Positions 43,703 to 64,000 of a stretch of DNA of 64,000 nucleotides are shown here, piece by piece. The notes below the pieces were generated by a model, which was not told the DNA's origin, did no database searches, and saw nothing but the letters and a program-made list of their open reading frames with translations. Every line of letters starts with the position of its first letter. The stretch's first letter is position 1. Origin of the DNA: Tubulanus polymorphus (lineage: Eukaryota > Animalia > Nemertea); the NCBI RefSeq assembly GCF_964204645.1, contig NC_134034.1, forward strand, positions 8,692,962-8,756,961. Direction: 5' to 3'. Position numbers and translations under genes: made by a program.

Positions 43703-46700
43703 GTGGTACGTGTAGTGGTACAAACGTTCTCTGGCGAGAGTCACGATGGAACATGGTCTCGAAGTAGTGGTTTGGCGGATGTAGGTAGAACAAGTTCTCC
43801 CGGTTCCCGCAATGTAGAACCAAATGTGATCTGTAAGATAAAACCAGAAAATTATTCAGGTGACGGATCATGGCAAGATTATAGATTACAATTTGAAACA
43901 GTATCAAGAATCAACCACTGGTCAAACGAGGTTAAAGCCGATTTCCTGTTTGCTTCATTACGAGGCGCGGCTAGACAATTAGTTTGTACCAAGTTGGTTG
44001 ATACGGAAAGATTAGAGTATCAAGAAATCTGTAAGATTTTAGATGCAAGACTTGGTTCAGGGGATTTTGCTGAAGTCCATCTGGCCGAACCGCGCAATCG
44101 AAAACGTAAGAGACATGAAAGTTTAAAAGAATTGGGACAAGCAGTAACAATACTGTGTGCTCAAGCATATCCTGAGACAAGCTAGCCAGAACCCATTTCA
44201 TTGAAGCATTGTCTGATGGTGAGATGAGAATGAGATTATGGCAATCAGATGTAAAGAGTTTTGATGAATTGATCTCGTACGCGTTGCGTTTAGAAAGTAT
44301 ATATATAATGGAATCATCATATGATAGGTTTCCAAGAGAAACGTATGTAAGACAAGCGATAGTTTCAGACGAAGTTTCTGAGCTTAAGTAAGAAATGGCA
44401 AGTTTAAGAGAAGATGTGCGACGTATGTGCAATAGTCGTAGAGATAATTATAAATCTCAGTCGACACCATATAGAGCAAGTAATAACGTAGTTCGTTATA
44501 ACTGCCAACAAAAGTGTCATATAGCAAGACAATGTACACAGCAGCCTTTAAACTGTCCCGCGCCGTTCAAAAGGGAGTAGGTTCGGCTAGAGTAAATAAA
44601 GCAAGTCTCCCAAAGAATTTAGAGATTCAAGATAGACAAAATAATGATGATTCTAAAGTATACGTACTGTCCAAAAATGATAAATCACAATCAGCGATTT
44701 ATTTGTCAGCAGTAGTACACGGAGTGTCTGTGAAGTATCTGGTAGATACCGGTGCTCATAACACAATCATCAGTAATCGTTTGTATACTGAAATTATAAA
44801 GAATCACAAGATAAAATTAGAATAATCAAATATACAACTCTATGCAGCTGATCATAGTAGTATTGGAGTGAGAGGTACAGCGGTCATTCCCTTAGGTCTA
44901 TTTGGTAAAAATGTACCTTGGGAAGTGATAGTGACTGAGATTAAAGAAGACGCTATTCTAGGAATGGATTTTCTGACAGCATATGATTGTCATATTCATT
45001 TAAAACAGCGGACAGTGACTTGTCAAGGTCATCAAATTCAGGAGGAGTCAATAGCTCCTATTCATGAGAACACAATATTAATTAGATCAACAGAAAGAAG
45101 ATAAAGGTCCCACCTTTATCTGAGATAACTGCGTCGGGCTATATCGACGAGAAAGATAAAGGGTACTTAGGCAAATGGGCGATGTTAGAATCGAACCACA
45201 ATTGGAAGTTAGGGCCCGAAATGTGTGTAGCACGTAGTGTAGTGGATACAGAGAAATCACAAATATTGGTTAGAATCGTAAATTTAGGCGATCAGCCGCG
45301 AGTATTGTATAAAAATACCTCTATGGCTAAGATTTCAAGAGTGAGAGTTATATGGTCACAGGAAGAGACAAGTGTCAAATCAGATCAAGTTAATCAAGTA
45401 GAGAGTAAAGAATCTCTAGAATAGGCCTATCTAGAAGACTTAATCAAGCGTAGTTGTGAGGGTTTGAGCCCAGAACAATCTAGAAAAGTGCGAAATTCAA
45501 TTGTGAAATACACAGATGTATTTGCGAAACCGGATACATATTTAGGGGAAGCGAAAGGAGTTTACCATACTATAGATACTGGTTCAACGCCACCTATCAA
45601 ACAGCGATTTCGGCGATTACCATTAGCGAAACAAGTAGAATTAGATAAACTTTTGAAAGATATGATGGATTCCAAAGTGATCCAGAATAGCCAATCACCA
45701 TGGAGTGGTCCAATAGTATTGGTGACTAAGAAAGATGGTAACCTTAGATTTTGCTTAGACTATCGGGCTTTAAACGAGTGTACAGTGACAGACTCCTATC
45801 CATTACCTCGAATTGATGATACGATAAGGTCGTTATCAGGAGCCAAGTATTTCTGTGGAGCCGATCTTCAGGCAGGTTACTGGCAAGTTCCATTATCGCC
45901 TAAAGACAAAGAAAAGACTGCATTTGTAGTCCCGCAAGGTTTATATCAATTTAGAAAAATGCATATGGGTCTAAAGAACAGTGGCCCTACGTTTGAGAGA
46001 CTCATGGAAAGAGTTCTAGAAGGCTTATTGAACGACATAGTCCTAGTTTATCTAGATGATGTCATTATATTTGGCAAAGATTTTGAATTGACTTTGACGA
46101 ATTTAGAAAAAGTTTTTGAGCGCCTATGAGCAGCAGGGTTGAAACTCAAGCCGAAGAAATCTCATTTCTTCAAAAGTAGTATTGAATTTTTAGGGCATAG
46201 CAATACGGAGATAGGAACAGTTTTTTCCCAAATTCAGGATGGAAAAGAAAGGGTGATAGCATATGCAAGTCGCACGTTAGCCAAGCCTGAAAGAAATTAT
46301 TGTGTAACGAGACGAGAATTGTTGGCTGTAGTACCATTCATTAAGCATTTTAAATACTATTTGATGGACAAGCGTTTCACTTTGAGAACAGACCATGCCT
46401 CTTTAAAATGGTTAATGTCATTTAAAGAACCAGAGGGACAGATAGCAAGGTGGATATCCGTATTAAGTACTTACGATTTTGAGATCATCCATAGGCTAGG
46501 CAAGAATCATGGTAATGCCGATGCATTATCCAGACAAGAGTGCACACAATGCGATCGTATCACAAGAAAGAATGAGGGCGACTGTAATGAAACGAGAAAG
46601 AGTAGAGTAAACAACTTAGTATCAGAAAAAGATATAACTGAAACTCAATATACGTATAGTCAATTTGCTCCAGAGGGTCATTGGCTACCTACGAATATAT

Positions 46701-48072
46701 CACAGGCTCAGCGTAACGATCCTGAGTTCAAGTGGATATTTCTGTGTATTGAAAACAATGGTAAACCAGAATAGTCCGATGTGAGCGAATTAGGCAAGGA
46801 CGCAAAATTCTATTGGGCTAGGTGGCAACAGTTTAAGATTATAGAGGATGTTTTATACATCTGTAAACAGAGAGAAGGATTCAGTGAATCCGTTTTACTA
46901 TTATTACCGAAAGATTACAGGGAAGAAGTTTTACACAGTTTACATAATTCTATAACTGTTGCACATCTAGGGGTTCGTAAAACTTTAACAAGAGTGCACG
47001 GCCGTTTTTATTGGCATCACATCCGGCAAGATGTAAGAACGCACTGCTTGTGTTGTTTTGTATGTGGTGCTTGAAAGACACCGACAGTGAAACCAAAAGC
47101 TAGCTTACAGTTATACAGAGTGAGTCTTCCAATGGAAAGAATAGCCATGGATATTTTGGGTCCATTGCCTACTTCACGCAACTTAATGACCTATATATTA
47201 GTAGTTTGTTATCATTTCACGAAGTGGGTAGAAGCTTATGCTTTACCAGATCAGAGTGCAGAAACCGTAGCGTGTAAATTAGTAGAATTTATATTGAGGT
47301 TTGGGAAGAATAATTCATACAGATCGAGGTGCTAACTTTCAATCTAGATTGATGAAAGAATTATGTGCATTATTAGAAATAAAGAATACTAGAACGTGCG
47401 CGTATCATCCACAGTCTGATGAATTGGTCGAACGATTTAATAGAACTTTATTGAATTGTTTGGCAATGACAATCCATGATGATCAAGAAGATTGGGATGA
47501 GTGCCTACCTTACGTAACTATGGCGTACAGAGCCACGAAATATGACGCCACGGGCTATTCTCCTAATCACTTGATGCTTGGAAGAGAGGTAGATTTACCA
47601 ATCGATGTGATTGCCTTCTCAAGTAGAGAAATCTTATACCGCGTATAGCATTTCTTTGAGTAAATGTCTTGAACAGGCATTCAAAGAAGTACGTTTTCAT
47701 ACCGTACGTACAAGAAATAAGAAGAATTACGATATTAGAACGAAGGATAGTAAATATCTGAGCAATGATTTAGTGTGGTTATTTAATCCAACGGTTCCGC
47801 AAGATTGATCCAAGAAATTAGCAAATAGGTGGTTAGGACTCTGTATAGTTAAGGGAGAAGTAAACGATGTAGTATACAAAATACAATTGCCGGATGAAGG
47901 TGTAGAAAAGACAGTACATTATAACAGATTAAAGCCATATATGGCGACTATAGATAGAGAGAATAACAAAGAATATACAGTTCAAGATGAAGAGTATGAG
48001 ATTTCAAGTGACCAGACAACAAGAGGGGGGCGGGTAGTCCGAAAGGCACGCCGCTGGAAAACCGAAATGTGA
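43703..48072 (+). pseudogene. gypsy gag-pol (many stops; RT-RNase H connection deleted)
   Basis: KPENYSGDGSWQDY gag, CCHC remnant, LVDTGA, RFCLDYRALN..YPLPRID..YLDD, TDHASLKWL, HLGVRKT, HTDRGANF, ERFNRTL. Confidence 0.95.
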
Positions 48073-48096: not shown

Positions 48097-48786
48097 ATGG
48101 CTCCTACTTTCGAGAAATTATGGAAATGCTCGTACTGCATGCGCTCGTTATCGGAAGGTACGAACAAGCGAAGGCATCTAAGAAACTGTAGAAATAAATC
48201 ATCTAGGAAGGAAAATACATGTACACCCGAAAACAGAGTATTCCAGTGCACGCTGTGTGAATTCAATTCACACAGTGTGAGCCTGCTAAAAGAGCACGTC
48301 GAAAAAAAAATCCAAAAGAATGCAGTCAAAGGACATTCAGGCAGATTTATACGCACAGTAGAACCTACGGAACGATACGATCGCGAATTATTACCATCAA
48401 TTCCTCGTTCAATCATACAAAAAGTACCAACAGACACTAAAATAACTCAACTGGAACCCATTATAGAAGTACCAGAAATCTCAATCGACGAACTTTTAGA
48501 GATAACCGGAAACTGGCAGGAAGAAACATCAGTACTAACACCAAGTGTGAGTCCTTTTAATAGCCCACAGAAGACCATTAGAAAAGAAAATTTCCAACCA
48601 AAAACTTCAAATCAAGACGCAAGACCATGGACGATTCCATTAATACCGGTAGATGTTACGTCCGACCCGAGAAGGAAGATGGTTGAACATCGGCATGTTA
48701 GAGAGATGTTTGGGGGGGAATTCGTATTAGTTTATCCGGTTGGAAGCAAGGTAGAATGTGAATTTTTTAATATTTTGAAGTTTTAA
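48097..48786 (+). CDS. Extra gypsy ORF3 with two N-terminal zinc-finger motifs (229 aa)
   Basis: Open ORF between the pol stop and the PPT; CSYC..RRHLRNC and FQCTLC..LKEH. Confidence 0.7.
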   Translation: MAPTFEKLWKCSYCMRSLSEGTNKRRHLRNCRNKSSRKENTCTPENRVFQCTLCEFNSHSVSLLKEHVEKKIQKNAVKGHSGRFIRTVEPTERYDRELLPSIPRSIIQKVPTDTKITQLEPIIEVPEISIDELLEITGNWQEETSVLTPSVSPFNSPQKTIRKENFQPKTSNQDARPWTIPLIPVDVTSDPRRKMVEHRHVREMFGGEFVLVYPVGSKVECEFFNILKF

Positions 48787-51885: not shown

Positions 51886-53437
51886 GCCGCCGTTTATGGC
51901 TATCTTCTAGTTAAACTTTTCGGCCGACTGAGAGCGTCACCGATCAAGATATTTCGTCGAGCAAGCTTGTGTACATATTCGTTATCTACCCGCCGGGTGC
52001 TTCGATTTTTTAGATTATTTACTTGCCGACTTTATTCGCTCTCGGTCGGGCGATTTAAATGTAAATAAATGTATATATATAACATAATCCGAGCGATGAT
52101 TTGAGATCGTCATTAGCACCTTTCGAGTCTCGTACTGTACGCCCGAATGAGACATGCATTTTTGACGCGACCACGACGCGAGACTTTTTCGAGACGCGCC
52201 GCGAACTAAGAGAATTTAAAGATATACTGTTAATTTTATTGACTTAGTGACATTAAATTTGAGAGTCCACGGACGATTTATATAAGTCTTATATCTTCGT
52301 CTTTTCTGAACGAGGAGAGGAGTTCTGCCGCTATTTTTCACCTCAGTGCCAGTCTATTATTATTCGTCTTTATGAGAGGACCAGTTCGATCAGGGACGTG
52401 TCAGCAGTAGTTAGATGGAGACCATCAATCGAGGATCCGAACCCTCAGTCCTTTATTGACTGATGGCCTTCATCCGGGGGTAGTCATGACAGGGTGTCAT
52501 ACGTAGAGAACGGTAGATGTTGGAGAGAACTAGGTTCGAACCCGAGCGAAATCCTGGCCAGGTAGTCGCCTACTTGGATGCTGAGCCCTGATCATGGAAT
52601 GAGAAGGATGAATATTTATTTGACGATAATTTAGATAAGAATTTATATCCTTTCCCTGAGGAGGAATTACTTCCCCCAATGTTTTCGTATAACCCGATTA
52701 TATTGTTCCAGGGCGAACCCTAGTAGCGAACGCCTATTTTACTTATCCAACCCTATAAAGAAACACTCTACCCAGGAGAGAAACGCTACAAAAATGGTGG
52801 CAGCGGTGGGATCGTATTTGAATTGATTTGATCAATAAGTTGATAGACCTGCACAGAAGAAACTCAACGAGAATTTTAGCACAGTATTCTTTTATCTTTA
52901 TTATTTTGGCACTGAGTGGAACGTACACTCTAAAAACAGGGAACATATTTCGAACTTAATGAACATGCTTACACTAAAAGAACGTGTTCACATCTTGTGA
53001 ATGTGTTCTGAGCGCTTCCATATACCAACTCAGAACGCCTGTGGGAAACCCATGAATGAGCCGTGTTCTCAAAATGTCCGATCAGTTACAGAACATCGCT
53101 TGAACATTTTTCAAAAGTCACGTGATTGTAGGACGCCATTGTGCAGTCGGGAGAACTTTTGCTTTCGTCAGCGAGAATATTTTGGTTAGGGCGGTAAGTT
53201 TTGTCTCTCTGTCATCTTCTCCTCTTGCCTTACGTTTGGGCCTATGCTGTGACTTATTTTTTCGCCGGCACGGCAGTAAATGATCATCGAATCGAGTGAG
53301 AATGACAGGGACTCGACGCTAAGAAATTCCCCCCGGCGGCCTACTAGCGTTCAGTTATAGTATAATACTACTATAGGCTATAGGCTGGAGTCTAGAGGGC
53401 CCTAGACTTAAAGAGACAAAGATAATGTTTTTTCTTA

Positions 53438-53858: not shown

Positions 53859-54755
53859 TTACATTGATTTTTGGGAATATTTTTCTTAAACTTATGAACA
53901 CATAGTCATAGGCCTACCACCTCCTCAGTCTTTTTAATACAACCACAGTTACACTGTGCAGTCTAAAAAACCCATCTATTTTCCTAGGCCTAGGCCTAAA
54001 CCGAAACAATTTGAGTTTAACAAACTGATTTAAACAAATGCGCCTACCTACATGAAATGGCAAGTTGGGTAATGTTGAAACATGAACTGTTGGTAATGGT
54101 AAATATCAAAATCGGATTCGAACCTAAAGGATATAATATCTAAGAAATGGCATACGCTGCTCTGAACCATCGTGGCCAGCTGAGAACCCTTGTGAAATGT
54201 AATTGAATCATATTTTGAACCAACCCTAACCCCATTTCTTCACGTTTACAGTATAATAGGTCTATAGCAGATTGAATAAAGTATTCAACATTGCCTAAAT
54301 TGCCATGAAATGAGCTTTGCAGTTGTTTGTTTTAAGATTTGAAAGTGGTTTTTAGGATACTTGTATGCTCAAAATCCATTCGTTTAGACGGTGGACTCCA
54401 AATTTCTTGTATCAAGCATGCTCAAAGTGAGAATTCAGTGTCAAAATTTAATAATCATCATTGATATTTCAGGTCTTAGGGCTTTGCTCTTATGTTTAAA
54501 AACAATAAACTTCTGCGTAGTTACCAATGGGTGCAGAAATTCACTTCAGACGCTCAAACGATTTTATAAAAGCCTTAGAGTTTTGTGCATATTTATCTCT
54601 TGATGTAACTGACTATTTGTGTCCTAATAGCCATAATGTGATACGTGTGTGGTCATATACAGATCTATGTGTTTTGATAAACTTTATTACACACTTGAGA
54701 TGTGAATATCAGATTAGAAACAAAGCCTAAAGTGGTAAGTTTAACATTCCATAAA

Positions 54756-57212
54756 ATGCTGTGGCATTGTAGCATCTGCAATTACTTTAACAGGGATCCT
54801 TATAAATTCCAAAAACATTTGTTGGCGAAACACAAAAATGCTCCAAATTTTAGAATAAACTGTCAATTCTGTGGGGCCACATATGCTAATTTTTCATCCT
54901 ATCGTACTCATGTAAGCAGGCACCATAGAGTAGAACAAGATAATGTGAATGAACTGGAACCTGTTAATGATGCTGGTATGCACAATGAAGATGAGGGGAT
55001 GGAAATAGACAATTATAATGCTGACGTTGAGCAGGATGCTAATTTCAAAAAGCGTATTGGGCAGTTTTTGCTCAGTTTACGTGAAGGTGCTCAATTGAGC
55101 CATCAAGCTACCCTAAGGGTTATTGAAAATGTGGAAGATTTATTGCAGGATATGAATTTCATTATAAAAGAAAACCTTTTTAATCAACTTCCTAATTTGA
55201 CTGATGAGGAAAAAGATATTGTCAGTGGATGTTTTGCTGATAGAGAAAACATTTTTGAAGGTTTAAGATCGATTCATAACCAGGATAAATACTTTTCTGA
55301 GGTTTTCGATATAGTAAAACCAATTGGAATTGTTTTAGGTTATCAATTAAGAAAAATTAAATTCAAAGGGAAGTTTCGGTATAAGAGAGTACCTGCAATA
55401 GGATATTATATACCATTACTCGAGACCCTTACAAATTTACTCAATCAGTCAGATGTAAAGCAATGTGTAGATTCTGGTCCGTATGATAGTGCAAATGAAT
55501 ATTTACATGATATGTGTGATGGAAAATTTGTGAAAAATCATCCTGTTTTTATTGCAAATCGAAAGACATTGTCTTTTCTTGCATACGATGATGACATAGA
55601 AATTGTTAATCCCATTGGGACTCACACTAAAAAGCACAAAATCGTTCTTTTTTATCTAATGCTGTGCAATATTCCCCCAAAGATGCGTTCCAAATTACCA
55701 AATATAATGTTAATTGCAGTGGCAAAGAGGAAAGACATAAACAAATTTGACAAAACTTTTAAGAAACTTCTAGCCAATTTTGTGCATGATATAAATGTAT
55801 TATATAATGGGCACACATTACCTCTAAAAACTGGACCATACCGAACTAATGGGGCTTTAATTTGCTTTTCAGCAGACACTCCAGCCTCAAATGAGATAGG
55901 AGGTTTTAAAGAGGGTGTGGGTGGTGCCAAAAAGCCTTGTAGAATATGTGAAATCAAAAGTGAAAATCTAAATACTTGTTTCCATGCTGATGATTCAGAA
56001 AAAAGAGATGAAGAAGAACACCTAGCAAGGTGTGATTATCTTGAGGAACTTGATGGGCAGGAAAGGAAAGCAATGAGTATAGAGTATGGTATAAACTATA
56101 GATCTACTCTTTTAGATGTTAAAGGGTTCAGAGTCACGGAATGCTTGGTAATGGATGTGATGCATGTGCTATTAGAGGGTGTTTGCCCAATGGAAACGAA
56201 ATTGCTTCTTTCAAGGCTTATAGATGATAACCTTATTTCCCTAAGTGCATTAAACAGTGCTATTGAAAACTTTGAATATAGCTTTTTAGATCAAAAAGAC
56301 AAGCCTCAAGCAATTGACAAGAAGCTCCTTAAGAATCAAACTAGTGGAAAGCTTGGTCAAAGTGCACAGGAAATGAAAATTCTTATGTTTATTTTACCTT
56401 TTATTATTGACATACCTAGTCACAATGAGTACTGGAAAAATTGGCTGCGGTTACAGAAGATTACAATTCTTTGTTTATCTCCAGTAATATCGGAGGATAC
56501 CATGACATTTTTGGAGATTCTTGTTACTCAGCATAATCAAAGATTTCGAGACTTATACCCAGCTATTAACATTACTCCTAAAATGCACTATTTGCTGCAT
56601 TTGCCATCACAAATGGCTATGTTTGGCCCCTTACGAAACCATTGGTGTATGCGGTTCGAGGCTAAACATGCCTACTTCAAGCAACTTCGATGGAAAAACT
56701 TCAAAAATATCCCCAAATCAATGGCTGTCAAACATCAGCGGTGGCTCACTTACAGCTTTAGTAGCAATTTTCTCAAATCACACGATACTGTCTGCTTGGG
56801 TTCTATGTTAGATATCAATGTACATAATCATGTAGATATTATGAGAACATACCTTATGGCAAAGGATCCAGATTTCACAATAAATAGGGCCATGGTGAGC
56901 CCAAGGGTTCTAGCAAATGGACATTGTTACATGCCAAATGAAATTCTCCTGCTTGGCTTTGAAGAAGAATTACCGTGTTTTGTCAGAATCGTCCATGTGT
57001 TAGTTTACAAAGATACCAAGTATCTTTGTGTTTGTAAGATGGATATTCAACATTACAGTCTATCTCGCAATGCATACGAAGTTCGTCCTGGCGAACATAT
57101 ACTTATGTTATGCGCAGATGAGCTGAAATTCCCTTGGCCACTACCCAAGGTTATCATTGATGAATCATGCTATGTGTTGCTGTGTTATTCGCCGCTTGTT
57201 AATTTAGCATGA
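54756..57212 (+). CDS. Intact EnSpm/CMC-family transposase with two N-terminal C2H2 fingers (818 aa from first ATG)
   Basis: YDDDIEIVNPIG, NIPPKMRS, ADTPASNEIGGFKE..CRIC, DVMHVLLEG, TPKMHYLLH, GPLRNHWCMRFEAKH; uninterrupted ORF. Confidence 0.92.
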   Translation: MLWHCSICNYFNRDPYKFQKHLLAKHKNAPNFRINCQFCGATYANFSSYRTHVSRHHRVEQDNVNELEPVNDAGMHNEDEGMEIDNYNADVEQDANFKKRIGQFLLSLREGAQLSHQATLRVIENVEDLLQDMNFIIKENLFNQLPNLTDEEKDIVSGCFADRENIFEGLRSIHNQDKYFSEVFDIVKPIGIVLGYQLRKIKFKGKFRYKRVPAIGYYIPLLETLTNLLNQSDVKQCVDSGPYDSANEYLHDMCDGKFVKNHPVFIANRKTLSFLAYDDDIEIVNPIGTHTKKHKIVLFYLMLCNIPPKMRSKLPNIMLIAVAKRKDINKFDKTFKKLLANFVHDINVLYNGHTLPLKTGPYRTNGALICFSADTPASNEIGGFKEGVGGAKKPCRICEIKSENLNTCFHADDSEKRDEEEHLARCDYLEELDGQERKAMSIEYGINYRSTLLDVKGFRVTECLVMDVMHVLLEGVCPMETKLLLSRLIDDNLISLSALNSAIENFEYSFLDQKDKPQAIDKKLLKNQTSGKLGQSAQEMKILMFILPFIIDIPSHNEYWKNWLRLQKITILCLSPVISEDTMTFLEILVTQHNQRFRDLYPAINITPKMHYLLHLPSQMAMFGPLRNHWCMRFEAKHAYFKQLRWKNFKNIPKSMAVKHQRWLTYSFSSNFLKSHDTVCLGSMLDINVHNHVDIMRTYLMAKDPDFTINRAMVSPRVLANGHCYMPNEILLLGFEEELPCFVRIVHVLVYKDTKYLCVCKMDIQHYSLSRNAYEVRPGEHILMLCADELKFPWPLPKVIIDESCYVLLCYSPLVNLA

Positions 57213-57968: not shown

Positions 57969-60900
57969 ATGGAGAATAGATTAGTAAAATGTATCGAGCA
58001 AGCCACTAAAAGAAAGGTCTGGATCTTCTGTACAACCTTCAATGATCTGCGCAAGAAAGGTATGAGCTTATTTTTAGGTATTTTCCTTGGTTGGATCCTC
58101 TGTGGATTTATTGCATCTCTAGTTAGCCATTCAATATTAATTTCTTTACTTCATAAAATGCAGCAGTATGATAAGAAACTGTTTGACCTGATAATTTCGA
58201 CTCAAAATTGCCTACAATGATTATTTTACAGCAAATCATTCATCATTATTGAAAACTCAACTAAAAAATGTCATTTTAATTTTTACAGCTATGACTAAGT
58301 TTGGATATCTGCACTTGCCGATGGTTGTCACCAGTGATGGAGCAGAGATATTAGATGAGGAGGTGTTCAGCGCCTTGAAAGTTGACGCATATTATATTTG
58401 CAATGAAGATCCAATCACAATGGCAGGTGGGCCTACATTGTTCTTTATAATTGACAGGCATCTTTTTTATTCCTATCAATCATCGTAAGAAATTTTAAGT
58501 TTAGATTTGTACCCTTTTCTATAGGCCAATACGTAGTTATATTTTTGGAAACAAATATATTGGTTAGTTGCCATACTTATTATTGTATATGATTTTTAAC
58601 CAATATTGGAATTGGTGATATGAGTAATCTTACCAAAATGTCTATTGAAAATTGTTGATAAGAAAAGGTTGGATACCCATGCAAGTTAGCATACCTGATA
58701 TACACCAAACCACCACTTTGTAAGGTAGGGTACAAAATAAAACTTCCTGGTCCTGAAAAATTTTGTATTTCTGCCACTATATCTAGGTTCATCTTGTTCA
58801 TTCAACAAACTAAACATCACCAGCAAAATTGACTCGTTTTTGGATGACTCGTCATCACAAAGTTTGGATGAAGCATCGTCATCGGATACAGCTTCGCTTC
58901 ATGATGATTCCTCTGATACTGGAGAATCTAATTTTCAGGTAATATATATAATGCTCGTTTGAAAATGTGATTTACTGAACTTTTAAACTCCCTTGAAAAG
59001 AAGCTGTTTTGTTTTGACCACTCCTAGCTTCTCTATACAGAAGGTATGACACAATTGTATAGGTACCAAACTTCGACCCTCCCTAGCTATGCTGATTGTA
59101 AGTATGTAATCATATGTATGATGCTTAGTGTTATTCCCTTAGTTATTCAGTAAATGAGATAATTTTTGAAAAGTGTCCTTTTTGCAAATGTTGTTACATC
59201 TTATAGAACCGCCCTTTTTCGGTTATATCTGCCCCCTTCCCCAAATTAAAATGCTAGTACGGCCCTGATGTCGGCTGTTCGAATATCACGGATACCGGAT
59301 ACCGGACACCGGACACCTAAATACCGGATACCGGATACTCGAGATTGCGGAGTATATAGCGCATCGGGTCTAACGGTCAGCGGTAAACGGCAGTTCGTGT
59401 GAGATCAAGTAGAAGAATAAAAGGCCTAGATTATTTTCATAATACATCGGTATATGCTTTTCAAGTAAAGTAGCATACAAATGTTACCGGTATAGACAAT
59501 TCAATACAGATTTATTGCTTCCGAGTAATAACTCGATTACATACGACAGACCCGGTAACAAACAGTGGACAGAAAATATTTTTTATAATTCTGCCAATTT
59601 GAACGGATTACCGAATAGACCGTTACCGTTTTGGGCAGAGCTTCTGTACAATACAAAATATCTTTATCATTCAGTTTCACGAAGAAGGCCATTTTAATTA
59701 AGTAAAGCGTTATTGACGATCTATATTTTCATGATCTTTAGAATCAAATTTAACATCAGGGTAAATAGTCACTTAGAGAAATGGTAGGTACCTGTATTCG
59801 ACGAACTGATTTTTGAAGGTTATACCAAAACAATTGGTGTCCAGGGGTGTTGATTTTCGACGATCGCCATGGACTCAATTTCATTTTTAGGGACATTGTG
59901 ATTGAGAATGAAATGTAGACATATCGTCCAATAAATAGAATATACCGAATATTCTACTCCATAAAATAAGAAAACGAATTTTAATTCTTTGTTTGTAAAT
60001 ACTTGTTTTTCATTGGTGTTCATCCTAAATCAACAAATACAAACTGTAGAGATCTTTAAAACAAATTTTATTAGAAGAAACGTTACAAATGCCAGACTCG
60101 CTTATGGCTTTCTAACTTGAGATATAGGGCCTTGCAGTACTCAGCCCTATTAACGAAAGGATTTTACAGAAAACCAAAAAGGGCCACCAATACATATCCA
60201 TCACCAGTGAAGTAAGATAAAAAATGAATATAACGTTTAACTTCACCTAACCAAAGAACAACAGTATTCAGAAAGAAATATGTATAATATTGAGATCGAT
60301 GATGACACTAAAAACGTGAAAGCAGGCTGTAATCAGGCTGACAAATAAGTTGGTTAGCCTCTGTAACAATTTGACAAATAAATTGTATGTCGCGGCAGTA
60401 CTACTTACAACAGCACGGAAACGACTCCTTAGACCCGATGCGCTATATACTCTGCAATCTCGAGTATCCGGTATCCGGTATTTAGGTGTCCGGTATCCGG
60501 TATCCGTGATATTCGAACAGCCCCTGATGTCATTATGTCAATGTACCAGTAAATAAATGTAAAATTTCTATAAGGACTAATGAACAAAGTATATGAGCTA
60601 ACCTCCACCCTCTATCATTTTTTATTCTTAAAAAATATGAGAAAATCTGGATTTCATTTTCATTTTAATTCACCCACTCCCTGATAATTAGAAACAAGGT
60701 AGTTTTTGTGCTGAGGCGTCCTTATGCTTATTTTATTTTTCGTTTTTCAGATTCCTATAATTAGTAATACGTTATCTGAAAGTTTATTAAAGTCACGCAG
60801 TTCTGCCATAGCTGTTTGGGATAATGTAGTAGCAGAAGTTGCCTACGGTGTTTTAGCTCAGATAGACATACGGAGGAAATCTGAATATGATCTGATTTGC

Positions 60901-63900
60901 AAAGAGATTGTTGAGAAATATCCAAATCTGAAGAGAGATGATGTGAAACAGGGTGAAAATAAAAGACAGAAGGCAGAAAAACCATGGGTATAAAACTTAC
61001 AATAAGTTCATCTGTTCACATACAATAAGTTCATCTGTTTGGCATTTTTTGATAATGCTAATACATAACTGGGATATTCACAATAGAAAACCCAAGTGAA
61101 ATTTTACCAGCGTAACCTATGTAATTGCACCATTAGTAATTGAGCCAAATTTCACTCTCTAAATATTTTGTTCATATAATGATGAAAAGAATGGCCTCAA
61201 TGGAAAACTTGGTGAATTAGATAAAATAATTACAGGCTTTTGAATTAAGCACTTTGTATATTTTCATTAAGCAGTTATTCGCTTATTTATATTTTAGAAT
61301 TTCAATTTGCATTTCTAGGCCGCTTTTAAAAAAAGTCTATCACAGAAAATCCGACATATCAGATATGATTGCAAAACACCGAATGCTGTGAAGGATTCTT
61401 CCTTTGTAGTTACAGGTAGGTGCATCTCTCAATCAATCTCCTAGGAATATCTTGTTTTCTAATACACCGATTTCTTGAAGTTTTCAGAAAATAATCTAAT
61501 AGCTTGATATCTTGAGTCAAAATATATTGTTTGATAGAAAAAGATTTGTGAGAACGAATTACAAATTGTAAAAGTATTGTTACATTCCCAAATCAATCTT
61601 TCTAATCGTTTCTCTTTGCTTTTAAGCTGAAATAGTTTACCTAATTTTGCTTTATCTTGCACAACAGTTGAACCACAAGACCGTTCTGATGAAAATTGTG
61701 TTCAAGCAGGTACTAGTAATGCTACATCAACGTCACAAAATCATTCAGTAGAGCATACAAATGACAAGGGAAACAGCAAAGACCCAACAATCTCTTCGGA
61801 CAATGTCGTGTATTCAGATTCTACCAAAAATGCTGACGTTAAAGACGGTAATTTACCTGGCTCTAGAAATACAATTGTAATTGCTTAAACATGTTTGATA
61901 TTTGGTGCTCGTCTATGGCAAATTCTGCCCACTCAGTAAAAAAGTGCCAAAGTCATTGGTATTTCGCCCACTTGGTCTTCGCCAAATTGGAAAGTTGTCT
62001 CTCATAGTGTCATGAGTGTATTACCACATTTCGATCGAACTTTGGCTTTTCCTGTAATAAAGATACTTGTAGATTCTGTGACTTGAAGAACATGCTTATA
62101 TGGTCAATCATGAAATATAATGCATTTACAAGCCTGCTTCATATGTATTTTAGTTGCATTTTCCATGAAACTCCTTGAAAAACTTGGTGAAAGTATGCCG
62201 TTAGATCGACCACGAATAAACAAATTGATGGAGAAGACATTTGAGGCGAGAAGAAAAGAAATCATGAAATCTGGTGACATAGACGCTGTAATTGGAAAAT
62301 ACAAATTTTTCAACTTCATGCAATATGTAAGTCATCAAGAAACCTAATCTCTAACCAATCATCTTCATCTTATGCTCATGATTCCAACCCTGATTCCACA
62401 ATTGTAGTATCCCTTTTAGCCCACTTGGGACTTTAGTCCCAGCGGGCTATTGCGTTCACTTTTCGTCCGTCGTCCGTCCATAGACGGAATCCAGTTATTT
62501 TGAGAAGTTTTGAAGACGCTTGAATGGATTTTCTTGATCTTTAGGTTATACATGTATCTACCCTAGATACATCTTTGAAAACGCTTTAAACAATTATCTT
62601 GATCTTTCACATATGTTTGTTTCCCCCTATGATGCATCAGTATGAGAAAAATTGGGTCAATCGGACCCAAGATGGCCGTCGTGTGATCTTTTTTGTGCCC
62701 AAAAGGTCATTTTTGCCCTCAATTCCAAGACCTGTAGCTTCCAAATAGTTAGTCTTGATATTTAATAAATAGTGTCACTGTTGTAGTATTCATCTCACGT
62801 GGAATTGGTGTTACCCAGGTTTTCGCCACCAGGGGAGTTGAATTTTGAATTATATACAATTTGCCTATTTCACGCTTGTTCCACAGTTAAGGTTAAATCT
62901 TTCTTGGCCCTCTAAAATCAGCTAAAAATAACTTTCAAATACGCAGCAAATACGTACACACGGTTGGCCATTAAAAAAAAACTTTGAAACAAATACTATT
63001 TCCCAAGTGGGCACTGTGACCCTGGACACCTGGTTAAGCATTCGTCTATTAGTTTGATATCCTGTAAATTTTTGCCTTCAGATTATGCATGACTTCAAAA
63101 TGCTAAATTTAACAGAAAGAGAATGCTTTCATAAGCGTTTCTTAGAGATGACTACGCAGTGCTCCTTGATGTTTAACATCGAACAGCAATTAACGGTAAA
63201 TTATATTAGATTTTGTTTATTAGCTCCAATATGGCCTGAAAGCTTAAGGGGTGAAATAAATCCTTTCCCTTCCTTAAGTTTTAATGGCAGAGTTAGTAAA
63301 AATTTTCTTTAAGTTTTTATTAAATTAATTTCATTTCATTTAAGATATCGATAATGGTTATATCGAATAAAGCGGCAGAGCTTCCAACCTTTACTGACTA
63401 CCACTAATCACTGAAAACATCTTGAGTGACCAAAAACTTATGTTCTCAGTATCTGATTTGATATTTTTTCAGAACATCGAAACCATCAGTCTGATACAGC
63501 GAATAGAAGATCAGCTTGGTTATGGTAGTACTAGTTCTTCTATTTACAGTCAGATAAAGGTTAGCTATCCATATATCTGAATGCATGTAAGAATAACTGG
63601 AGAATCCAGTGAAAATAGCAAATTCAGTTAAATACATGCCATTGGAAAGACATTTAAGATTTTACCCAATTCAAATGAGATACATTGAAAGGCTTTTTCA
63701 CTGTGCAACTGAGCATATATTCATACAATTCATGCATTCAAGCATTATCCGTTCTCCAATTTCTACGAAGCCGAATTTTGAAAAAGGGCCTCATTATGTT
63801 GAGCGGGAAGTGTATTTTGACAAATATAACCCACAGATTGCATTATTTATGAAAAAGCGACAGGCTGGCCATAGTGCCCCATGGGGCTCTTGTTTCTATG

Positions 63901-64000
63901 TTCTCCCAGATCAAATGATACATGTCATCACTTTGTAATCCAGACTTTTAACCTTTCATTCCTAGGCTGCTGATGTAAAGAATCCTTTGAAGTTCCCAAG
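57969..64000 (+). CDS. Multi-exon partner gene of the EnSpm element: N-terminal CIDE-N/KHA-like domain plus SAMD3-like helical region; 3' end outside window
   Basis: Predicted exons 57969-58059, 58289-58426, 58787-58938, 60751-60987, 61319-61415, 61668-61847, 62154-62326, 63082-63195; all GT-AG with matching phases and no stop; motifs IVEKYPNL..W, KKSLSQKIR, MEKTFEARRKEI. Confidence 0.82.
59273..60522. mobile_element. Non-autonomous TIR element with ~100-bp TIRs and 9-bp TSD (Mutator-like)
   Basis: cctgatgtc|ggctgttcgaatatcacggataccgg ... ccggtatccgtgatattcgaacagcc|cctgatgtc; lies in an intron. Confidence 0.9.
62414..62742 (+). mobile_element. HINE copy (same family as 40320-41489), intronic
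   Basis: ttttag start, hairpin gcccacttgggact-tt-agtcccagcgggc, gtcc microsatellite, homology to 41080-41489. Confidence 0.82.

Follow-up and report, generated by a model that had tools for sequence, protein, structure and literature searches.

Here, we describe a spliced gene that lies behind a transposase gene in a 64,000-nucleotide stretch of the genome of the nemertean Tubulanus polymorphus (NCBI RefSeq assembly GCF_964204645.1, contig NC_134034.1, positions 8,692,962 to 8,756,961 of the forward strand; hereafter the window). Our findings favor, by a modest measure, a model where this partner gene is the second, accessory gene carried by a DNA transposon of the CACTA/EnSpm-Plavaka kind that has two genes and was recently active. 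The 520-amino-acid product reads as a CIDE-N domain at the N-terminus, interrupted by a phase-1 intron, followed by an acidic Ser/Asp linker and then by a SAMD3-like core of some 400 residues, an architecture not described before for the accessory protein of a two-gene CACTA-type transposon. In the T. polymorphus genome, a CIDE-N gene stands behind the transposase in four diverged transposon families. DNA transposons with two genes are known, yet little has been written on the accessory proteins that animal CACTA-type elements encode; full-text literature searches returned no paper linking CIDE-N or "CIDE domain" with a transposon or transposase, and none linking SAMD3 with a transposase or transposable element.

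The partner gene and its transposon

Positions are given in window numbering, with DNA past 64,000 as window-equivalent; C1 to C12 denote genome contigs, and the window lies on C10. An initial annotation had joined eight exons, from 57969 to 63195, into a gene starting with a CIDE-N/KHA-like domain and paired with a CACTA-type transposase. When the gene was rebuilt from sequence by script, the borders of that model proved exact to the base, all of them GT-AG, the phases of the first eight exons were again 1,1,0,0,1,1,0, and exons 1 and 2 gave the peptide that had been quoted. Its end at 63195 had to be moved, as two further exons follow. The complete gene, on the forward strand, has 10 exons, GT-AG sites at every intron, 520 codons and a single terminal stop, which falls 259 bases beyond the window end. 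Exon 1 (57969-58059) holds the start codon and the N-terminal half of CIDE-N and ends in phase 1; its counterparts in the other transposon families and in a sea-urchin gene (Lytechinus pictus, see below) align with it. Exon 2 (58289-58426; phase 1) holds the C-terminal half of the domain, with the acidic motif SDGAEILDEEVF. The acidic Ser/Asp-rich linker, of low-complexity composition, occupies exon 3 (58787-58938), and its counterpart in a second family of this genome, family 2, is an open frame of similar composition at the matching place. The SAMD3-like core begins in exon 4 (60751-60987; ..ICKEIVEKYPNLKR..KPW), whose end, ..PW|GT, is common to family 2, Lytechinus and the metagenome contig L039. 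Exon 5 (61319-61415), with the KSLSQKIRHIRY motif, is also present in family 2 and matches the Lytechinus gene at 70% identity over 17 residues (E 1e-4). Exon 6 (61668-61847) encodes a low-complexity polar linker and is the least conserved exon among copies (94.6-97.3% identity); for exon 7 (62154-62326; LDRPRINKLMEKTFEARRKEI..), every one of the 13 genome matches adjoins a transposase copy. Exon 8 (63082-63195) was the final exon of the earlier model, from which exon 9 (63473-63559) was absent. Exon 10 (63966-64259, the window holding 63966-64000) contains the best-conserved SAMD3-like block (..FGFYYVFDINYP..), ends at the stop and matches the last exon of the Lytechinus gene at 31% identity (E 6e-8).

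The transposase open reading frame (ORF) lies upstream on the same strand (54702-57212) and counts 836 codons from a GTG, with a likely ATG about 18 codons in. It encodes N-terminal C2H2 zinc fingers, the candidate catalytic residues D297, D392 and E653, and the pairs C413-x2-C416 and H629-x3-H633, all of the latter positions, catalytic ones included, being invariant or near-invariant in 29 homologues. This DDE, C(2)C and H(3)H combination is the CMC-type pattern given for the CACTA/EnSpm-Mirage-Chapaev-Transib group (PMC12730594), and the CACTA-type assignment thus stands. The Pfam matches of the protein itself are weak (C2H2 fingers, and DUF4218 at E 0.04). Among the homologues, 10 of 29 match Pfam Plavaka and 3 of 29 Transposase_21; database relatives are 33-40% identical over 95% of the length, and an NCBI protein from T. 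polymorphus is 99% identical. The label "KDZ/CACTA-like" was also considered for this transposase and rejected, CACTA/EnSpm-Plavaka being supported instead and Plavaka not being similar to KDZ (PMC12730594).

The element as a whole spans 52926-65746 (window-equivalent), 12.8 kb in all, including a 1,259-bp insertion in intron 3 that is private to this copy. Exons 2, 7 and 10 each have four near-identical genome matches, on C10, C3 and C12 (twice), and alignment of 20 kb around each of them gave sharp element borders common to the four copies. The copies are 96-99.4% identical and all four contain the partner gene, which has an intact ORF in the window copy and the C3 copy; the transposase ORF is intact in the window copy only, the other copies having stops or a shortened frame. 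The left terminal inverted repeat (52926-52950, forward strand) is CACTCTAAAAACAGGGAACATATTT, and the right one, beyond the window, ends at the shared homology border at 65746 (window-equivalent). The ends read CACTCTAAAAAC...GTTTTTAGAGTG, with CACTC..GAGTG termini and an inverted-repeat match at 22 of 25 bases. Flanking dinucleotides are TA/TA in the window copy, AA/AA in the C3 copy and CA/CT in both C12 copies, which have identical flanks and were therefore counted as one insertion; a 2-bp target duplication is likely, judged from these few insertions. Duplications of 2 bp have been reported for animal CACTA elements (PMC1636069, DeMarco et al.) and for Plavaka (PMC12730594, Kojima). The left subterminal region (52926-53325) is rich in GAAC-core repeats (GGAACAT, TGAACAT, AGAACG/TGTTC, CAGAAC) and the right terminal 400 bp hold 10 AGAACA; in a k-mer count on both strands, 11 of the element's 24 AGAACA fall in the two terminal 400-bp stretches. 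With CAC..GTG termini, subterminal repeats and a likely 2-bp duplication, comparison of the element and of its transposase supports its assignment to the CACTA/EnSpm-Plavaka kind, and the earlier recognition of a CACTA-type element is borne out.

The insertion in intron 3 (59263-60521; 1,259 bp) is a nested non-autonomous element outside the gene exons, with inverted ends of about 100 bp (GGCTGTTCGAATATCACGGATACCGG...) and a 9-10-bp target duplication (CCCTGATGTC). It is missing from the other three copies, and a conspecific DNA contig jumps exactly from 59262 to 60522. It looks like a Mutator-type miniature inverted-repeat transposable element (MITE) that inserted after the window copy had landed. 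Within introns 7 and 9 (62414-62870 and 63700-63899), contig depth reaches 100-1000x that of the neighbors, pointing to very high-copy dispersed repeats.

Recurrence of the pairing across families and species

Among the matches listed for the searched exons, each lies about 1 kb downstream of a transposase match and in the same orientation. Family 2 measures 9,745 bp (C1:7885232-7894976 plus at least 6 other places), encodes a transposase 46% identical to that of the window and has at least 7 copies; the two that were aligned are 100% identical, and the family looks currently or very recently active. Between its partner gene and ours only the exons align, at 35-65% amino-acid identity, and its first intron is likewise in phase 1, after ..DK-G. 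Family 2 also carries a 171-bp tandem array in an intron. A whole-genome six-frame scan with Pfam CIDE-N (E <= 1) gave 12 matches, seven of them family-2 copies. Two others, at C5:9284030 and C2:18677102, each lie beside a decayed transposase of the same kind, loci that were also read directly. An identical pair (C3:15396272 and C4:17386301) belongs to a 12-kb segment that is duplicated and lacks such a transposase, and a single weak match occurs on C1. The duplicated segment, 99% identical between its two places, holds the best-conserved CIDE-N gene of the genome (C3:15393800-15396434 and C4:17386301-17386453; 46 bits), with an integrase-like ORF nearby.

Outside this genome, Lytechinus pictus has a homologue 38% identical to our transposase and, 900 bp on, an NCBI-annotated spliced gene whose 498-amino-acid product is recorded with a Pfam CIDE-N match. 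Its exons match partner exons 2, 4, 5, 7 and 10 in order, exon 1 aligns too, and its CIDE-N is interrupted by an intron at the same place. The linkage of partner gene and transposase proposed in the initial annotation is therefore borne out as constant in the four copies of the element, in three further families of this genome and beside the sea-urchin homologue. In teleosts the order of transposase then SAMD3-like gene is present, without a recognised CIDE-N. In Labeo rohita (contig L045, 8551-12791) a frameshifted transposase stands directly upstream of a SAMD3-like gene model, and two fish SAMD3-like gene models (P0011 and P0113) start with the C-terminal tail of such a transposase; BLASTP of the window transposase against the fish N-termini was not significant, but the tail of the C5-family transposase did match.

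The partner gene is confirmed as real, and not a chance string of open frames, given its repetition in four copies, the homologous gene of family 2 in which only exons are conserved, and the colinear sea-urchin exons.

CIDE-N domain and SAMD3-like core

Against Pfam CIDE-N (PF02017; curated cut-off 23.5 bits), with the spliced proteins scored exon by exon, exon 2 alone reaches 12.5 bits in the window gene, that is family 1 (E 0.16), 15.6 bits in the C2 family, 22.6 bits in family 2, 26.9 bits (above the cut-off) in the C5 family, 34 bits in Lytechinus and 46.3 bits in the non-transposon gene of C3 and C4. Exon 1 alone matches at positions 4-28 of the domain in the C2 family (16.7 bits) and in Lytechinus (14 bits), gives no CIDE-N match in the window gene, family 2 or the non-transposon gene, and is frameshifted in the C5 family. 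When a profile was built from nothing but the exon-2 peptides of the four transposon families, its nine best PDB matches were all CIDE-N structures (DREP2, DREP3, CIDE-B, CIDE-A, DREP4, ICAD, CIDE-3 twice, and DFF45); the best of them was DREP2 (4d2k; E 1.5e-5), and all nine align to the C-terminal half of the domain. In the ESM Atlas, the named clusters nearest to the window exon 2 are "CIDE-N domain-containing" and "DFF subunit beta", then other ubiquitin-like modules, with scores <=0.85 that, being under 0.9, serve as leads only. The intron that splits the domain lies at the same alignment column and in the same phase in the four transposon families, the sea-urchin gene and the non-transposon CIDE-N gene. 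A basic KRK in exon 1 and an acidic DGAEILDEE in exon 2 occupy aligned places and might correspond to the opposed basic and acidic surfaces through which CIDE-N domains pair head to tail. Prediction of the exon-1 and exon-2 peptides as a two-chain complex scored 0.02, which is evidence neither way.

From these comparisons we conclude that the N-terminus is a genuine, though in family 1 strongly diverged, CIDE-N domain, as the initial annotation had proposed on the basis of a motif resemblance; the four-peptide profile and homologous exons scoring up to 34 bits argue for it. The same annotation had also named KHA as a possible relative. This could not be upheld as a specific kinship: neither exon 1 nor exon 2 of families 1 and 2 matches Pfam KHA (PF11834) at E <= 10, and KHA was seen solely as a minor share of one remote ubiquitin-like look-alike cluster. 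When compared with the known CIDE-N proteins (DFF40/CAD, DFF45/ICAD, CIDE-A/B/C and Drosophila DREP1-4), the partner appears homologous over about 76 N-terminal residues and keeps the basic motif of the N-half and the acidic DG.E..DEE motif of the C-half. Unlike them, it is borne by a transposon, its domain is very divergent (12.5 bits for exon 2), and it has no nuclease, DFF-C or CIDE-C part, with the SAMD3-like core instead.

Beyond exon 2, the exon-by-exon scan gave no Pfam match. A profile built from the 230-residue single-piece exon of the C5 relative and one Logan protein matched, out of 1.84 billion, 1,282 representative clusters with E <= 1e-3; the members bear such names as "sterile alpha motif domain-containing protein 3(-like)" or "zgc:113210" and come from many teleosts, the coelacanth, Haliotis, Pycnogonum, Antedon and the nemertean Lineus. 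No Pfam domain covers the core in any of 48 long members (0/48). The N-termini of these 48 are SAM-like in seven and BTB in one, with one weak zinc-finger match; by reading of the sequences, C2H2 fingers occur in member P0074 and long helical, coiled-coil-like stretches start some of the fish members. With hhalign, the window exons fall in order on the alignment of the 48 members: exon 4 on columns 189-216 (E 8e-4), exon 7 on columns 304-341 (E 4e-4) and exon 10 on columns 445-513 (E 2.3e-7, probability 93.5%). The conserved blocks ..IV..YP.SF.D.., ..TY..QR..IN.. and ..F..YYVFN..YP.. are matched colinearly; the hallmark DSYGC.NW block of the SAMD3-like family was not seen in the transposon family. 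Judged by this colinearity, the core belongs to the SAMD3-like family, for which there is neither a Pfam model nor a fold match in PDB, and the SAMD3-like C-terminal part named in the initial annotation is sustained. Vertebrate SAMD3 and the SAMD3-like/zgc:113210 family thus share a homologous core with the partner (three colinear exons, the best at 93.5% hhalign probability). They differ in starting with SAM-like, BTB, zinc-finger or long helical stretches and not with CIDE-N, and in being annotated as ordinary genes.

AlphaFold modeled the core of a fish member confidently (predicted local distance difference test, pLDDT, 91.7 for the whole core; pLDDT 95.5 and predicted template modeling score 0.91 for the C-terminal 291 residues). 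Its best matches in PDB reached Z 5.0 and Z 4.3, and Foldseek gave E 0.45 or worse; SH2-like and small helical DNA-binding-like folds among these rows were below a useful level and were set aside. A shape search of the ESM Atlas with the core returns SAMD3-like clusters. It also returns a mostly arthropod cluster of 224 members, of about 509 residues, which has the core fold (template modeling score 0.60) and in which 21% of the proteins carry Pfam CIDE-N; this suggests that arthropods, too, have the CIDE-N plus SAMD3-like architecture, which is seemingly widespread and unnamed there.

Possible roles of the partner protein

CIDE-N and SAM domains form head-to-tail polymers, and BTB domains form dimers. 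Since SAM-like or BTB self-association modules take the place of CIDE-N in relatives of the partner, the protein may act as an oligomer, and its N-terminal position would be a slot for such modules. We tentatively suggest, as a possibility that falls somewhat short of probable, that the partner plays the role of TnpA in maize En/Spm. CIDE-N would let the protein self-associate head to tail, the subterminal AGAACA repeats or the transposase would gather the core on the element, and the oligomer could then bridge the repeat-rich ends or scaffold the transposase, assembling or regulating the transposition complex. Maize En/Spm is similarly a DNA transposon with two proteins (TnpD and TnpA); it has CAC.. 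termini, subterminal repeats and target duplications that are short, and its accessory protein is encoded either downstream of the transposase unit or in overlap with it (PMC1636069). It differs in its 3-bp duplication, against a likely 2 bp here, and in its accessory protein, which here combines CIDE-N with a SAMD3-like core. No partner exon matches a plant transposon accessory family in the exon-by-exon Pfam scan; the resemblance to TnpA is one of position and presumed role only. Among animals, SmTRC1 of Schistosoma mansoni is also CACTA-type, with 2-bp target duplications and extra non-transposase products, whereas its termini start CCC and no CIDE-N or SAMD3-like part is reported for it; its extra proteins were reported to lack similarity to anything in other animal elements (PMC1636069).

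Several observations weigh against the model of an accessory transposition gene. Among the CIDE-N domains compared, that of the window gene has diverged furthest: exon 2 lies below the Pfam cut-off and has no PDB match by itself, exon 1 has no Pfam match alone, and the exon-1 profile has none in PDB. Searches with exon profiles did not find the CIDE-N exon downstream of related transposases on the contigs L039-L044, which come from metagenomes and, for L042, from Nematostella, so the domain is not universal. The confident fish-member models, compared with PDB by Foldseek and VIA-align, gave the core no recognisable DNA-binding or catalytic fold, and the transposase's own C2H2 fingers could read the subterminal repeats without a helper. 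Finally, RNA support for the predicted junctions was sought and not found: three of the four sequencing runs carry introns and the MITE-free allele, which marks them as genomic DNA, and the fourth, only guessed to be RNA, has no coverage of the exons.

Of the alternatives, the one that survives best, unlikely as we hold it to be, is that the partner is a passenger, a captured host SAMD3-like/CIDE-N gene that has no role in transposition or that acts on the host, for instance against silencing. The absence of any pointer to DNA binding in the core fold would suit such a gene, as would the size of the SAMD3-like family with its 1,282 clusters, in which the named members looked up bear ordinary gene names. 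Between copies A and B we count 7 non-synonymous and 2 synonymous codon changes, which may be set on the same side; yet neutral divergence is expected between inserted copies and is uninformative on selection in the active lineage. Captured cargo has a precedent in fungal Plavaka/EnSpm elements, which carry TET/JBP dioxygenase genes: their transposase lineage is related, their duplications measure 2-3 bp and their second gene is constant, but that gene encodes an enzyme of known activity (PMC12730594), whereas the partner looks non-enzymatic and has an assembly domain. Persistence speaks for an accessory gene instead. The pairing has been kept across transposase lineages 25-46% identical within this genome, in the sea urchin and, with another or no predicted N-terminal module, in teleosts, and retention for that long is easiest explained by a need of the element for it.

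One CIDE-N domain can pair with another, as DFF40 and DFF45 do, and the domain might thus contact host CIDE-N proteins (DFF40/DFF45-like or CIDE-like) instead of making the protein self-assemble, recruiting or blocking a nuclease or damping a cell-death response; engagement of the host DFF40/45 system had already been raised in the initial annotation. At least one other CIDE-N gene of the genome is better conserved (46 bits) and has the intron at the same place and in the same phase, which fits a domain taken from a host gene. Relatives, on the other hand, carry SAM-like, BTB or other modules in the CIDE-N position, and this interchangeability favors generic self-association over a DFF-specific role; no DFF40 nuclease domain turned up when the genome was scanned in six frames with Pfam, in a scan whose controls were silent too. 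We regard host contact as improbable. That there is no real gene at all, but a relic in decay or a chance succession of GT/AG sites and open frames, has on its side the uncovered exons in the sole candidate RNA run and is close to refuted by the 520-codon ORF, whose 10 exons are intact in two copies, by exon-only conservation with family 2 and Lytechinus that includes intron positions, and by three exons that match the SAMD3-like profile colinearly.

Returning to the accessory-gene model, a broader proposition may be advanced, with less confidence than the model itself: that the accessory gene of a widespread animal lineage of CACTA/Plavaka-like elements belongs to the same family as vertebrate SAMD3, with interchangeable self-assembly modules (CIDE-N, SAM or BTB) set before a core whose fold is confidently predicted and has no solved relative, CIDE-N serving as a transposon assembly module and SAMD3 and the fish "SAMD3-like" sets being domesticated or still-mobile helpers. 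The architecture offers a clue to how the SAMD3 family arose. If the proposition is true, human SAMD3, for whose core there is neither a Pfam model nor a matching solved fold, would receive its first functional lead, and CIDE-N would gain a new setting, outside cell death and lipid droplets. It would also provide a simple reason for raised CIDE-N counts in some genomes, such as that of Hydra, where CIDE-N is over-represented and was listed, unexplained, beside transposase domains (PMC7642931). Given a window copy with both genes intact and a sister family of at least 7 copies, the system should be testable by a transposition assay.

Upstream of the element, the window also contains an ORF run (44868-48072) with protease, reverse-transcriptase and integrase-like motifs, which by reading of the translations is a candidate long terminal repeat retrotransposon, and it is followed by an ORF encoding a 229-residue zinc-finger protein (48097-48786).

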